Source of the DNA: Blepharisma stoltei ATCC 30299
Lineage: Eukaryota > Protista > Ciliophora
Length of the DNA: 64,000 nt
Assembly (NCBI GenBank): GCA_965603825.1
Contig: CBFDEM010000033.1
Location: 62,001-126,000, forward strand
Direction: 5' to 3'
Shown: positions 4,305 to 10,045 of the stretch, one piece after another
Position numbering within the stretch: the stretch's first letter is position 1
Layout of the letters: each line of letters opens with the position of its first letter
Program-made: the position numbers and the translations under genes
The notes under the pieces: model-generated
Told to the model about the DNA's origin: nothing
The model's database searches: none
What the model saw: the letters and a program-made list of their open reading frames with translations, nothing else

Positions 4305-4835
4305 TTATATTAAATTTAAACTTTCTTTATAAAGATCTTCCACGCATTTCTTATAGTCACTAAAACTTAAAGGGACTTTGCAGAAACTGAACAGGATCAT
4401 GTCAGTTTTCGGGACTATTGCTAGCGCTATTTGTGAGCTCGATATAGAATACTCCCTTGCTAGGAACTCTGTTTTAAGCTCGATATTTGAAAATTTCAGT
4501 GCTTCAAGCCCAGCATTCATGCAAGATGACAGCAAATTGCAGCCATGGGACAAAATTTGGAAATTTAGCATGATGGACAAGTATGGGTATTTTGATGTGT
4601 CAATAATTGAAGAAAAAAAGGTTTTTAAGATCTGCTCGTGAGAAGAAGTATCGATACTGAATAAGCAGTCTGAAAGGACTACGTCAATGATTGCAGATTG
4701 GAAGTCACTTTTTTGAGAGAAACGTGACTCATATGGGCCATAGACTGCTGCGATTATTTGAGTGTCATTGTAAGTGTATCTTGAATAGCCCATTGAAGGC
4801 CATGCTGAGTCTACTAAACTGCTTGGCTTGTTCAT
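4305..4835 (-). CDS. Exosome RNase PH-like subunit, Rrp46-like
   Basis: G.S.Y....TQIIAAVYGP, I.....YP and Q.LS.G.NLLS..MNA...AL follow the RNase PH pattern. Confidence 0.7.
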   Translation of the reverse strand: MNKPSSLVDSAWPSMGYSRYTYNDTQIIAAVYGPYESRFSQKSDFQSAIIDVVLSDCLFSIDTSSHEQILKTFFSSIIDTSKYPYLSIMLNFQILSHGCNLLSSCMNAGLEALKFSNIELKTEFLAREYSISSSQIALAIVPKTDMILFSFCKVPLSFSDYKKCVEDLYKESLNLI

Positions 4836-4984: not shown

Positions 4985-7009
4985 ATGAATCAAGAGCAGC
5001 TTGAAGAGTATGATGCTCTCCAACTGATATATCCAGATATCATTACAAAGATAAATGACACCTCTTTTGATATCACAATAGAGTCTGATTCTAATGAAGA
5101 ATTCCCATGCGGGGTCAAGCTTTCTATAGTCTTAACCCCTACATATCCTCAAAAGCCTCCAAAATACTCTTTAGTTTCTCTCTACAAGCTGGATGCAAGC
5201 GCTCTTTCATCTTTAACACAAATTGTCAAAGACATAGTAGACCGAGACTTAGGAAATCCTATGATGTTTGATATTATAGATGGAACTAGAGAATGACTAA
5301 ACAGCTATAAACTTGTCAGCGAAGCTGAACCCATTGAGAATCCTGCCAAACCGAAAGAAAAATCTAAAGAAAAATCAAAACCTAAAAGAAAATCCAAAGA
5401 CAAATCAAAGCCTGTCACAAGAAATGTTCAGGACTTAACCTGTATCAGTTTTAGTGACTTTGAAAGAAAAGAATACAGAAAAAACAGAAACAAAAAGAAA
5501 GCGCCTCCTAAGCCAAAACAAAAGCTAGGTTTTAAAATGCTAAAAATTGGAGCTGAGATAAAAGAAGTCAATGAAAATCAAGAAGTTGAAGAAGAAAAAA
5601 TTGTGACAAAAGCCAAAAGGACACCAAAAATAGTCACTGAAAAGCCAATTGATAAAGAAGCTTTAATTGTAAAATTGAAAGAAGCCTCAGAATTAGCTGA
5701 GCCAAGTGTAAAGCCAGCTGTTAATGTTTTATTTATAGGACATTTAGATTCAGGCAAATCTACTATTTGTGGGAATTTATTATTAATGACTGGGAATATT
5801 GATCAAAGAACTTTAGAAGCCTATGAACAAGAAGCAAAAGAATATGGCCGAGACGCCTGATGCCCCGCTTATATAATGGACCAAAACCCAGAAGAGAGAC
5901 AACGTGATCTTACCATTGAGGTCGGAAAAGCTTCTATTGAAACTTCTACCAAGCGGCTTTCTATTCTTGACGCCCCAGGCCACAAAGCATTTATCCCTAA
6001 TATGATAGAAGGTACCATTCATTCTGACTATGCTGTACTTGTGATTTCAGCCAGAATCCAAGAGTTTGAAAACGACTTCGACAAATCTGGGCAAACTCGA
6101 GAACATTCCTATATCGCAAAATGGCTAGGAATCAGCAAATTAATCATCCTTATCAATAAAATGGACGACCCATCTGTAAATTGGTCTCAGGAGCGCTTTT
6201 TCCAAATACAGTCTGCAATGTCACAATTTTTGATAGAAAAATGTAAATATGAGCCTGAAAATTTAAGCTGGATTCCGACTGCAGGGATTTCTGGACTAAA
6301 TATAGTGGAAAAAATAAATGGCTGGTATCAAGGCCCGACCCTTTATGAGAGCCTTGAAACTTTAAATGTACCTGAAAGGGCAAATGGGAATGCACTAAGG
6401 ATACCTATATTAGATAGGACAAAGGATCAAGGCATAACTGTTTTTGGCAGAATTGAAAGCGGGCAGGTGGTAAAAGGCTTAAAAGTGATGGTAATGCCTA
6501 TAAGAGCAAAAGGAGAAATCATTGATATTATTGACCCTGACGAAAATTACCTTATGTATGCAAATTCTGGGGAAATCGTAAAAATTAAGCTAAAGCTATC
6601 AGAAGAAATCAACGTCCAGCGTGGGTTTATTATATGTGATATCCATGACTACTCTAAATCTACAGACGAAATTGTTGGAGATGTGCAGCTTTTAGACCTT
6701 TTAGACGACAAACCTTTGATTTCTTCAGGCTACAGATGCTTAATTCATGCACGCGCTGCATTTGAAGAATGCGAAATTTCTGAAGTTATAGCCAAAATTG
6801 ACGAAAAAAAGGGAAAAAAGCTGAGAATTCCTTATGCATATTCTAATCAAAGGGTAATTATGAGAATAAGAATTGATGACGAGATAGCTGTCGAATTAAG
6901 CTCCAAAAATAACCAGATAGGAAAATTCATATTAAGGGATAGGGGCAAGACCATTGGGCTCGGAAAAGTTGTAGACGTAGAAGATACAGAAGCTGAAGAA
7001 GATAGGTAG
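4985..7009 (+). CDS. RWD-domain plus eRF3-like translational GTPase fusion, 674 aa
   Basis: Three track ORFs lie in one frame, separated only by TGA (5294-5296, 5858-5860). RWD motifs: EQLEEYDALQLIYP, YPQKPP, LGNPMMFDII...EWL. Lys-rich linker. G domain: GHLDSGKST, DAPGH, GQTREH, NKMDDPSVNWSQERF. C-terminal GKFILRD.GKTIG.GKV. Confidence 0.88.
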
Positions 7010-7023
7010 ATTATTTATTAAGT

Positions 7024-7740
7024 TTATCCTTGATTTATAGCTTTTTCCTTAGCAGCAAGCATTTCTTCCGCTTTTTTGATGATGCTGTCATGGATTTTCT
7101 GGACTTCTTTTTGTAAATTTTTTACGTCGTCTTCGCCTATGCTTGTGATATCTTTGATTTGGCTTAAAGCATGTGTACGACGATTCCTAATTGAGTTTTT
7201 AGTTTCTTCTAAATATTGTTTAGCTTGCTTTATCAGCTCATTTCTCATCTCTTTTGTAGGCTTTGGGATGGACACTGAAATAGTCCCAGAGCCTTCTTTT
7301 CTGCAATTGACATTCAAATTTGCTGCTTGTATAGCTGTAATTATAGCGTCTGTATTTGCAGCATCAAATGGCTTTATAGAAACCTCACTAGCATTTCTCA
7401 TAGCGACTTGGGCTAGATTTGACAAATTATCATGCTTAGAAGTCACATAAAGCTCATCAAAAATCCTAGGGTCGCCTCTAGAAAGGGTGACTCTTTGTAA
7501 GCATTCTTCGAAATGTTTTAATGGCTTCGCCATGTCTTTTTTTATAGGCTCAATGTCAAATTCTTCGTCAACTTCTTCGTCAGATTGATTTCTATTCTTT
7601 CCTTTGCCTTTCTTGTCATTGTCTTTTCCTTTCTTTTTGCTAGCGAAAAATCGGACTGGTTGATATGAAAGTGGCGGGAGTCTATGGAGGGGGTAAGAAA
7701 AGCTAAAAGTTCTAAAGAGTCGTGCTAAGCGGAATGCCAT
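7024..7740 (-). CDS. MRRF: Mitochondrial ribosome recycling factor
   Basis: Arg/Phe-rich presequence, NLAQV, IKPFD, AI..ANLN, IPKPTKEMR.EL.K, K.SIRN.R and EDD...LQKEVQKIHD. Confidence 0.88.
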   Translation of the reverse strand: MAFRLARLFRTFSFSYPLHRLPPLSYQPVRFFASKKKGKDNDKKGKGKNRNQSDEEVDEEFDIEPIKKDMAKPLKHFEECLQRVTLSRGDPRIFDELYVTSKHDNLSNLAQVAMRNASEVSIKPFDAANTDAIITAIQAANLNVNCRKEGSGTISVSIPKPTKEMRNELIKQAKQYLEETKNSIRNRRTHALSQIKDITSIGEDDVKNLQKEVQKIHDSIIKKAEEMLAAKEKAINQG

Positions 7741-7753
7741 TTATTAAGATAAA

Positions 7754-10045
7754 TTAGAGCTTTAAGCCTTTAAGTTTGCCTTCCTCTTGTCTTGTGCGAA
7801 TATATTTATTTGTATTCGCTAGATAAACTTTGATGTCTTGGCTTGCGTCACCTCCTAGTTTTTTCACTCCATTGTTGATGTTAGAAATCAAGTTGTTTAT
7901 TGAGTCAATTTCTATAGTCGGCACGTCTCTAAGTAGGAAACTGATATACTTATTCAAAGTGTCAATAAGCAGCATGACGCCTTCATTGGTACTTCCAATA
8001 TTCTCAGCACATTTTTCCGCCCTTTTGAGATAATGCAAAACTCTTTGGTCATTTCTGACGGCTTCAGTCCAAAATAGTTCAGTAGCTAGTAAAGCACCGC
8101 GGACTTCGGCAGTTTTTGTAGACTGCTTGTGGGCGTATTGGGCTGTATTGTGGACAAGGGTTTCTGAGTTTTCTTCTTCAAAGCAGTTTACGTAGGCTAA
8201 TGTTGATAATGCCAGGGTAATTGCGTTGGATTTTGCGGCGGCATCAGTAAGCTCGTCTTGGTATAAAATGAGGGCTTGAGATATGAATTCGTAAGCGATT
8301 TCTTCATGGGTCTTTTCTGGGTCGTGGTTGTGAATGCAAAGGGCACATTGTAAGCTTAACTTTAGGCCGAGTTCTGGGTCGACTTCTATGATTTTATTGA
8401 CAAGTTGTAGTAAAATCTTCAGAATGTGGTGAAAAGTGATTTCAGAGTCGTTGCTGTCAAGGTTAGGAACTAGCTTGATATATTTGAATAAAAGTGCTGG
8501 ATAAGTGTATTTAATTCTTCTGTTTCCTCCTTGTGAAAGTTTAGTTCTAAAAATGTGAAGGAGATGGAAATGGGTTTTCACATCAGGTCCTTTAATTAAG
8601 AAAATTATTTTTGCGACCCCTTGCTGCTCATCTTCAAACTCATAGGCTTCTGATTCTGTTGTATCATTAGCATCAACTAGCAATGAAGAAATATAGCTAA
8701 TTAATTTTTCAACGGTGTCCACGTCTGATAATTCTACCTTATTTGCGACCACAGCTTTGACTATTTTGAAGGCTACTTGTTTTCTTGATTGGAACTGCAA
8801 GTAGTTCATTAGTTTTGGATAGTTACTCATTGATAAGATCGCTAAGGATAAAGATTCTAATGGATGTGATAGCAGTTTCACTATCGTTTTCAATGATTCT
8901 TGATCAAGTCTTCCATCAGACTGATTTTTGTCAATTAAAGTGACGCAGGAATCCAAAATCAAATTGACATAATTAATGTTATCTGGATAACACCTTAATG
9001 ATAAACGTAAAAATGCTGCATTTAGCTCTAAAAACTTGGCAGTATCAGCTGGGTTGCTTTGTTCTTGGATTATTTTATCAATATAAGTTTTAACCAGGTC
9101 AAAAATATTAACCCTCTGGACTATCTCCAAATCTGCCTCTTTCGCAAAATCTGCAATTCTCGTTAACAAGTTGATGAAAATTCCTTTAATTTCTACAGCT
9201 GGCTGCAGCTGGGTGCAGGCTTCTAACAGAAGCTCAAGAGTATGCAGGTGATAGTCATCAGGGAAGGCTTGGATTATACAGTCCATTAAATACTGCTGAG
9301 AAATCGCGTCCTTGCTGGAAGTAACGATTTCTATGATTCTTGGCAAAACCACGCTTTGGTACAGCTCTAAATTGACGCCTTGTAGATTAGAAAGCCTGAC
9401 AATGTTTTCTCCGACAGTCACTTTTAAGTCGCTTCTTTCTTTTTCACGCTTGGTTTTGTCCCTGACAGTGCCTGTATGCTGCATTCTTACCCAAAGTCTG
9501 TTCATTTCTGAGAGATTTTGTAATAAGAAATCGACTGAATCAGTCACGTCGCCAGAATCTTCGTATTCTGAGCCTTTGTCAGGCAATTTGTCCTTGCAGA
9601 CTTTATTAAGATAATATCTTAAAAACAGCCCTCTCATAGGATGCTGGACTCCTTTAATCATTTCTATCAAGTCTTTCAGCACATCTTTTGCCGTCAGTTC
9701 TCTTGTTTTAATGTAAACGGACCCAGCTGCCACCAACAGGTACAATCTTGGCAAAATATTTGTAGTGTGCTGGATTTTTTCGTAAATTTCTGCAATTTTT
9801 CCAGTCCTACGGTGCTCTTCCATGAAATATGACTCAAGTCTGCTCATCTGGTCGAAAACCTGCATATATAGCTCAAAATACGCTTTTGGTGAGAGCAGAG
9901 AGGCTCGGAGTTCTGATATCATAATCGCTGCATGCTTAAGAACCTCTGGCATATTTGATGAATCTAGTGCTTTTTGCATTTGGAAAGCTTCTTGTTTAAC
10001 GATGGTGACTGATTCTTCAAGGTACTTTTCCTGCTCTTCGTCCAT
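7754..10045 (-). CDS. VPS35: Retromer cargo-recognition subunit Vps35
   Basis: ELR.SLLSPK.Y.ELYM, NILPRLYLL, GVQHPMRGLFLRYYL, EMNRLWVRMQH and QQYLMDCIIQAFPDDYHL. Confidence 0.97.
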   Translation of the reverse strand: MDEEQEKYLEESVTIVKQEAFQMQKALDSSNMPEVLKHAAIMISELRASLLSPKAYFELYMQVFDQMSRLESYFMEEHRRTGKIAEIYEKIQHTTNILPRLYLLVAAGSVYIKTRELTAKDVLKDLIEMIKGVQHPMRGLFLRYYLNKVCKDKLPDKGSEYEDSGDVTDSVDFLLQNLSEMNRLWVRMQHTGTVRDKTKREKERSDLKVTVGENIVRLSNLQGVNLELYQSVVLPRIIEIVTSSKDAISQQYLMDCIIQAFPDDYHLHTLELLLEACTQLQPAVEIKGIFINLLTRIADFAKEADLEIVQRVNIFDLVKTYIDKIIQEQSNPADTAKFLELNAAFLRLSLRCYPDNINYVNLILDSCVTLIDKNQSDGRLDQESLKTIVKLLSHPLESLSLAILSMSNYPKLMNYLQFQSRKQVAFKIVKAVVANKVELSDVDTVEKLISYISSLLVDANDTTESEAYEFEDEQQGVAKIIFLIKGPDVKTHFHLLHIFRTKLSQGGNRRIKYTYPALLFKYIKLVPNLDSNDSEITFHHILKILLQLVNKIIEVDPELGLKLSLQCALCIHNHDPEKTHEEIAYEFISQALILYQDELTDAAAKSNAITLALSTLAYVNCFEEENSETLVHNTAQYAHKQSTKTAEVRGALLATELFWTEAVRNDQRVLHYLKRAEKCAENIGSTNEGVMLLIDTLNKYISFLLRDVPTIEIDSINNLISNINNGVKKLGGDASQDIKVYLANTNKYIRTRQEEGKLKGLKL

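Follow-up and report, generated by a model that had tools for sequence, protein, structure and literature searches.

A gene joining a DFRP2-type RWD domain to an eRF3-derived GTPase in Blepharisma stoltei suggests a link between termination factors and ribosome-collision sensing

What would a GTPase of the translation termination family do with an RWD domain in front of it, and how would such a protein come about? The question is raised by a gene on a 64,000-nucleotide stretch of the genome of the ciliate Blepharisma stoltei ATCC 30299 (contig CBFDEM010000033.1, positions 62,001 to 126,000, forward strand; the window, whose numbering is used below for the gene and its neighbours). A preliminary description of this locus, made from its letters, had proposed a single 674-codon frame, visible when TGA is read as Trp and encoding an RWD domain, a Lys-rich linker and a three-domain eRF3-type GTPase. 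We show here that this chimera is an intact and selectively maintained gene whose two parents both reside in the same genome. It appears to be an eRF3 paralogue equipped with a recognisable new N-terminal targeting domain, of a kind that we did not find described before, and its composition suggests a link between termination factors and ribosome-collision sensing.

An intact gene read with UGA as tryptophan

The coding sequence and its two reassigned codons are located as follows:
4985..7009, plus strand: complete coding sequence of the RWD-eRF3 chimera, 674 codons followed by TAG, with TGA read as Trp at 5294 and 5858
5294..5296, plus strand: in-frame TGA, Trp104, a conserved Trp in the C-terminal helix of the RWD domain (REWLN in DFRP2 paralogues)
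5858..5860, plus strand: in-frame TGA, Trp292, a conserved eRF3 Trp (RDSWW in eRF3a and eRF3b, the two canonical eRF3 genes of the genome)

The only stop codons inside the frame are these two TGAs, and the terminator is the TAG at 7007. In the alignment with the paralogues, Trp stands opposite each TGA, within REWLN of the DFRP2 gene and within RDSWW of eRF3a and eRF3b; the proposed 674-codon frame was thus borne out, TGA being its only internal stop and both copies lying at conserved Trp positions. Over the whole window, treating TGA as sense and TAA and TAG as stops raised the coverage by long open reading frames (ORFs) from 19.6 to 36.1 kb. The UGA=Trp code of B. stoltei is already published, and UGA is apparently an unambiguous Trp codon in Blepharisma. 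The ATG at 4985 is preceded by two in-frame TAA codons, and the start of the protein is homologous to that of DFRP2 (MNDEQLEEY versus MNQEQLEEY).

Continuity between the two halves was assessed over the 141-codon stretch that runs from the RWD domain to the G domain. The coding frame contains no TAA or TAG there, compared with 10 and 7 in the other two frames; in a shuffling test, the open linker frame had P = 3e-4 and the whole ORF was matched in 0 of 20,000 trials. The eRF3-derived part opens at amino acid 154 (ISFSDFE) and its first Met is residue 186. The boundaries of the gene are also tight, its neighbours lying only 149 and 14 bp away. In the assembly that was searched (B. stoltei, 41.46 Mb, 64 contigs), the junction DNA has a single occurrence, apart from a 91-nt match of 77% to the paralogous RWD gene. 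Mis-assembly was rejected because the linker frame is open and the junction DNA is unique in the genome.

Two parents in the same genome

The N-terminal half comprises:
4991..5302, plus strand: RWD domain of the DFRP2/RWDD1/Gir2 type (Pfam match over amino acids 3-101, last helix running to REWLN at amino acids 102-106)
5318..5443, plus strand: lineage-specific Lys/Pro/Ser-rich linker, amino acids ~112-153, with the core PAKPKEKSKEKSKPKRKSKDKSKP and a counterpart in neither DFRP2 nor eRF3

Database searches were run with the chimera in three pieces cut at the TGAs, and the joined translation was used in local comparisons only. Pfam domains agreed with the proposed succession of RWD domain, Lys-rich linker and three-domain eRF3-type GTPase in one frame. 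The assignment of the N-terminus was even strengthened, since own-genome, database and PDB matches all place the RWD specifically in the DFRP2/RWDD1/Gir2 type. The Pfam match has an E-value of 6.6e-19 and 68.6 bits (cut-off 22.8), and a YPxxPP motif is found at amino acids 54-59. Within the genome, the domain is 59% identical to L012 (59-61% to Blepharisma-type DFRP2 proteins), a 202-aa gene on the minus strand of the same contig (C33:153,3xx), 86 kb from the chimera; L012 combines RWD with DFRP_C (29.9 bits for the latter), i.e. it is the DFRP2/RWDD1/Gir2 orthologue. An exhaustive search of 1.84 billion representatives returned DFRP2-type proteins (RWD plus DFRP_C) as all of the nearest RWD relatives, and the best PDB match was human RWDD1 (2EBM, E = 3e-8). 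All nine columns that are invariant across eight DFRP2 proteins are kept, including the Tyr of the YP motif, which aligns with Y74 of yeast Gcn2, a residue whose mutation disrupts Gcn1 binding. No Pfam match to DFRP_C was found in amino acids 105-291 of the chimera, and the columns of the DFRP_C region are missing in its alignment with DFRP2 proteins. These results show that the first ~110 residues are a duplicate of the cell's DFRP2/RWDD1/Gir2 gene from which DFRP_C, the domain that binds and stabilises DRG2/Rbg2, was lost. L012 itself lies in a conserved RPN6 - DFRP2 - Methyltransf_16 block, seen both at its own locus (C33:151860-155168) and in a related species (L027, on a contig of Logan SRR24908292; genome translations in these synteny comparisons used NCBI table 4, UGA=Trp). 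Accordingly, the stable copy is the DFRP2 parent, and the chimera is derived; the RWD tree does not order the RWD duplication relative to the related species (AU, approximately unbiased test, p = 0.34).

The spacer that follows is new. A tandem repeat at 5348-5409 (30-nt unit, 2.1 copies, 84% match) encodes part of KPKEKSKEKSKPKRKSK, and the new spacer seems to have grown through local tandem duplication. The net charge over amino acids 105-245 is +15.

The remainder of the protein is of eRF3 origin:
5444..5713, plus strand: eRF3 middle (M) region from the eRF3 parent, with ISFSDFE, KLGFK and EKPIDK common to B. stoltei and Stentor eRF3
5714..6307, plus strand: GTPase (G) domain, from a GTP_EFTU match and motif alignment
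5738-5761, plus strand: P-loop GHLDSGKS, intact
5903-5920, plus strand: switch I RDLTIE, with the invariant Gly changed to Asp308 and the Thr kept
5969-5983, plus strand: DAPGH, intact
6005-6028, plus strand: IEGTIHSD of the G domain
6068-6082, plus strand: ENDFD, with an invariant Gly changed to Asp364
6155-6166, plus strand: NKMD, intact
6431..6637, plus strand: domain 2 (beta-barrel), with a GTP_EFTU_D2 score of 26.2 bits, under the cut-off of 30.3, and a full-length alignment to eRF3 structures
6701..6979, plus strand: domain 3 (eRF1-binding C domain), GTP_EFTU_D3 / GTP-eEF1A_C
6920-6940, plus strand: GKFILRD in domain 3, with Phe and the second Arg kept, the first Arg changed to Lys and Thr to Ile

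The Pfam GTP_EFTU match is split by the second TGA into segments of 33 and 103 bits. Among solved structures, the best relatives of the GTPase are eRF3a (279 bits), HBS1L (199) and eEF1A (196). An HBS1 identity was rejected: HBS1L scores 80 bits under eRF3, and the true HBS1 is a separate gene (L008, contig C48, 401 bits to HBS1L). In a 40-taxon maximum-likelihood tree, the GTPase is sister to B. stoltei eRF3a and eRF3b (99/95), all three fall together with Stentor in a heterotrich eRF3 clade (100/99), and the HBS1-like L008 and eEF1A fall outside the eRF3 clade. From residue 154 onward the chimera is thereby shown to be an eRF3 duplicate that lost the PAM2/Q-N-rich, PABP-binding N-terminus. 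The motifs quoted in the preliminary description are all present (RTLEAYEQEAKE, W(TGA)CPAYIMDQNPEER, NKMDDPSVNWSQER, GKFILRD, RDLTIE and IEGTIHSD), and the G1, G3 and G4 motifs and the catalytic His are kept. Within GKFILRD, F648 and R651 are retained and R647K and T649I are changes; the Phe and second Arg of this motif, GRFTLRD, are required for eRF1 binding in S. pombe. Among the columns that are at least 93% conserved in eRF3 homologues, the chimera differs at 18 of 105 (87 of 105, or 83%, kept) and eRF3a and eRF3b at 1-2, most of the chimera's changes being conservative.

The genome encodes further related factors apart from the chimera. It had been asked whether a canonical eRF3 exists elsewhere, and two do: eRF3a and eRF3b (L002 and L003) have LNANAASFEFNFNASEFVPSF PAM2-like N-termini and a Q/N/Y-rich tract, with RGKTVE (L002) or KGITVE (L003) as switch I and IGGASQAD and GRFTLRD in both. 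The housekeeping eRF3a and eRF3b and HBS1 being separate genes, the chimeric copy is free to specialise. A third eRF3-type gene, L004 (C44:507218-508339, plus strand, 549 aa), shares 46% identity with the chimera, matches eRF3a at 433 bits and HBS1L at 287, and keeps GRFTLRD; its N-terminus is acidic and unrelated (MGDEEIPDCWEDLD...), and in the tree it belongs to a separate ciliate clade with the environmental sequences P0015, P0016 and P0025. A 97.6%-identical transcript fragment of L004, ending at a TGA, is present in MMETSP data.

Three eRF1 paralogues are encoded (L014 on C11, L015 on C37 and L016 on C28), one with the canonical NIKS and two with TSIKS, the GGQ context of L016 (GGQSSTRY) being divergent as well. 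This eRF1 paralogy was noted before (bioRxiv 10.1101/2023.10.09.561518); two of the paralogues are weakly transcribed and were suggested to have functionally diverged. Pelota is L017 (C33:205403), and with a dedicated HBS1 and Pelota encoded separately, delivery of Pelota by the chimera is less necessary. GCN1 was found at C25:196,910-203,689 (GNC1_N, HEAT_EF3_N, HEAT_EF3_GNC1 and HEAT_GCN1 matches), and GCN2 is also encoded. Pfam searches of the genome with Gcn1_N and HBS1_N, run with no positive control, gave no match, GCN1 being found via the other GCN1 families. The Blepharisma GCN1 candidate aligns through its C-terminal part (E 4.6e-34) with residues 1862-2438 of a 2898-residue PDB chain (8i9x_LR, and 14 further entries) whose label, 'Ribosomal protein L19', seems to be mistaken; the chain behaves like a GCN1 homologue.

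Age, selection and distribution

The terminal branch of the chimera in the GTPase tree measures 1.06, versus ~0.2 for eRF3a and eRF3b, about five times longer. We compared the proportions of synonymous (pS) and nonsynonymous (pN) differences for both halves. Between the GTPase and eRF3a or eRF3b, pS is 0.72-0.74, i.e. saturated, with a pN of 0.24; between the RWD and DFRP2, pS is 0.68 and pN 0.26. Since synonymous sites are saturated while pN is low, the gene is old and under purifying selection, and a recent origin of the chimera was rejected on the same saturation. As this substitution pattern indicates, the chimeric gene is old, constrained and specialised, and not a decaying copy. The notion of a specialised eRF3 paralogue put forward in the preliminary description thus agrees with the placement in the eRF3 clade, the long branch and the presence of canonical eRF3a and eRF3b elsewhere.

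The architecture was looked for from both ends. On the eRF3 side, the best 120 matches in each of the 210-668 and 348-1106 aa ranges contained no PF05773 (RWD). On the RWD side, the exhaustive search gave 32 matches, none with a GTPase; the long ones were an S28 peptidase with RWD and DFRP_C, GCN2-like kinase fragments and bacterial repeat proteins. Metagenome scans and an exact look-up of the 377-aa fragment that follows the TGA were blank, and the neighbours in the ESM Atlas were RWD-only clusters. The window's own proteins are apparently masked in the searched databases (the window VPS35 was not listed at 100%), and the absence of the chimera itself from them is therefore uninformative. Broad surveys of the eRF3/Hbs1/Ski7 GTPase family describe variable N domains and never mention RWD, papers naming both Blepharisma and eRF3 do not mention an RWD-eRF3, and neither RWD nor eRF3 is listed in the supplement to the genome paper. 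Neither the protein and metagenome searches nor the family surveys thus contradicted the initial impression that a fusion of RWD with a translational GTPase is not known from elsewhere.

The surroundings of the gene are as follows:
4305-4835, minus strand: upstream neighbour, divergent, separated from the chimera by 149 bp
7024-7740, minus strand: downstream neighbour, a ribosome recycling factor (RRF)-like gene, convergent, separated by 14 bp
7754-10045, minus strand: VPS35

The RRF-like gene has a probable organellar presequence. With only 14 bp between the stop ends of two convergent genes, the 3' ends of the chimera and the RRF-like gene must overlap or be extremely short. VPS35 has a 90%-identical paralogue at C62:82766-85054, and each of the two shares 82% identity with the only copy seen in the related species, so that the VPS35 duplication is recent. 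The gene content beside the two VPS35 copies differs, the chimera sits at a break in synteny just past the RRF gene, and the paralogous VPS35 region of B. stoltei contains no chimera homologue.

A possible role at stalled or collided ribosomes

We tentatively propose, by analogy with known systems, that the chimera could deliver eRF1 or an eRF1 paralogue to stalled or collided ribosomes while tethered to GCN1, competition with GCN2 being a side effect. At collided or stalled ribosomes, the RWD domain would attach to GCN1 in its C-terminal region, beside the leading ribosome's P-stalk and factor-binding site. Thanks to the basic tether of ~140 residues, the eRF3 module would be able to place eRF1 in the A site, perhaps in the form of one of the two divergent paralogues that are weakly expressed. 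Peptide release or rescue would follow upon GTP hydrolysis, and GCN2 would face competition from the RWD for GCN1. The model for such an arrangement is yeast Gir2-Rbg2. The RWD of Gir2 is both required and enough for Gcn1 binding; in the disome that carries Gcn1 it connects Rbg2, placed at the A-site factor region of the leading ribosome, with the Gcn1 C-terminal region by the P-stalk, and overexpressed Gir2 blocks Gcn2 activation via competition for Gcn1. The chimera would represent a covalent version of Gir2-Rbg2 in which a termination GTPase replaces DRG2.

Several observations weigh against this proposal. The leading ribosome of the yeast Gcn1-disome carries an A-site tRNA and therefore offers no substrate to eRF1-eRF3. 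Compared with 108 other sequences (107 database eRF3 homologues and the paralogue L004), the chimera is changed at four positions that are invariant in all of them, G308D in switch I, A347S, G364D and L377I, and at the near-invariant Q346H and R647K, changes that may impair its function as a GTPase or on the ribosome. The Lys-rich linker might just as well serve nuclear localisation or RNA binding. The chimera is known here from genome sequence alone, and we infer GCN1 binding, eRF1 binding and GTPase activity from homology. No orthologue was found among the transcriptome-derived Blepharisma proteins in the database, and on the one contig of the related species that spans the site (Logan SRR24908292) VPS35-RRF is followed by alpha-amylase, with no chimera homologue. 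The chimera is thus known from a single species, B. stoltei. Nothing ties the chimera to UGA decoding or handling.

We weighed this proposal against other explanations. An artefact, in which an adjacent RWD gene and an eRF3 paralogue gene were joined by mis-assembly or by misreading TGA 5294 as sense, would fit a gene known from the assembly only and a TGA that sits exactly where the RWD domain ends. It is nevertheless scarcely credible, since DFRP2 proteins have the conserved Trp of REWLN at the position of this TGA and UGA is apparently unambiguous, since 140 further codons are open beyond it (P = 3e-4), since the eRF3-derived M region would have no start codon of its own before residue 186, and since the junction occurs once in the 64 contigs. 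The gene could also be an evolutionary by-product, a chimeric duplicate barely or not expressed, without specific function and drifting to loss; the long branch, the changes at invariant eRF3 positions, the absence from the syntenic site of the related species, the lack of an orthologous fragment among database proteins and the purely genomic record would all be explained. We give this little credence, because pN is only 0.24 although synonymous sites are saturated, because the frame has stayed open over 674 codons although the genome is AT-rich, whereas a neutral copy this old would contain many stops, and because 83% of the highly conserved columns are retained versus ~60% identity overall.

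The remaining explanations accept a functional protein. It could mainly regulate the GCN2 pathway, its RWD competing for GCN1 like Gir2 or IMPACT and its eRF3 module only positioning the protein at the factor site or sensing a stop codon or eRF1, so that termination pauses spare the integrated stress response. The RWD belongs to the Gir2/DFRP2 class, which prevents Gcn2 activation when overexpressed, the genome has genes for both GCN1 and GCN2, and altered invariant residues in the G domain fit a catalytic cycle of lesser importance; a pure competitor would, however, need none of the catalytic His, P-loop, NKxD and eRF1-binding residues that are under purifying selection, and a standalone DFRP2 is already present for the competitor role, so that we regard this explanation as rather unlikely. 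In a further scenario the eRF3 paralogue would be functional without its RWD binding GCN1: the RWD, which has a UBC-like fold, would recruit an E2/E3, the SUMO machinery or a ciliate-specific factor, or the Lys-rich segment would direct the protein to the nucleus or to RNA, for a termination-related or moonlighting role apart from collisions. RWD domains elsewhere bind partners other than GCN1, as RWDD3 does Ubc9, exchange of the N-terminal domain for the sake of lineage-specific interactions is known in eRF3, Hbs1 and Ski7, and the linker is strongly basic (+15). This scenario seems distinctly unlikely to us given that the RWD derives from DFRP2/Gir2, a class with documented GCN1 binding, and keeps all columns invariant in eight DFRP2 proteins, including the Tyr aligned with Gcn2 Y74. 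The bolder form of GCN1-tethered delivery, improbable as we judge it, is an undescribed GCN1-coupled branch of termination or rescue. Paired with one of the two divergent, weakly transcribed eRF1 paralogues, the RWD-eRF3 would act on collided ribosomes only, for example at slow stops or where UGA is read by near-cognate tRNA-Trp(CCA) competing with eRF1, and would release or rescue them while silencing GCN2.

Comparison with known systems helps to place the chimera. It shares with eRF3 (GSPT1/Sup35) the M region, the G domain, domains 2 and 3, the P-loop, DAPGH, NKMD and the Phe and Arg of GRFTLRD; it differs in having an RWD and a Lys-rich linker in place of the PABP-binding PAM2/Q-N-rich N-terminus (typical of eRF3, not universal), in its roughly fivefold longer branch and in its 18 altered conserved columns, which include the switch-I Gly, G364 and A347. 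With Gir2-Rbg2 (DFRP2/RWDD1-DRG2) it shares the RWD subfamily and, by analogy, a layout of GCN1-holding RWD, flexible linker and GTPase for the A-site region. The link is covalent in the chimera instead of running via DFRP_C, and the GTPase is of the eRF3 type, the class that carries eRF1, whereas DRG is an Obg-type GTPase that works with an occupied A site. The history resembles that of Hbs1 and Ski7, where a termination-family GTPase was duplicated, its N domain replaced for a new partner and its rate accelerated after duplication; the chimera, however, arose from eRF3 itself and not from Hbs1, its N domain is a recognisable globular RWD fold, and it keeps the GRFTLRD-type motif that Ski7 lost. 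RNF14 and RNF25, whose RWDs bind GCN1, offer a mammalian parallel in which GCN1 and an RWD-bearing effector are linked to eRF1 or eEF1A at the A site. In that system the protein with the RWD is an E3 ligase and tags the trapped factor to be degraded, whereas the RWD of the chimera is part of the delivery GTPase itself.

What gives eRF3, Hbs1 and Ski7 their distinct roles is the N-terminal domain, with PABP, the 40S subunit at its mRNA-entry side or the exosome as the binding partner. An RWD N-terminus of the GCN1-binding type would be a fourth kind, directing termination factors to collided ribosomes. A gene fusion is a classic sign of functional coupling, and this one supports the emerging link between GCN1 and A-site factors (Rbg2-Gir2, and RNF14 acting on eRF1 and eEF1A). 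It is moreover a natural and testable handle, in a ciliate in which UGA still seems to be contested between eRF1 and a near-cognate tRNA. The chimera is also a clean case of new-gene origin: both parents can be identified within one genome, and a short tandem repeat contributed part of the new linker. If the GCN1-coupled branch were real, GCN1 would be functionally and directly linked to the eRF1-eRF3 machinery, a link that might exist non-covalently elsewhere.

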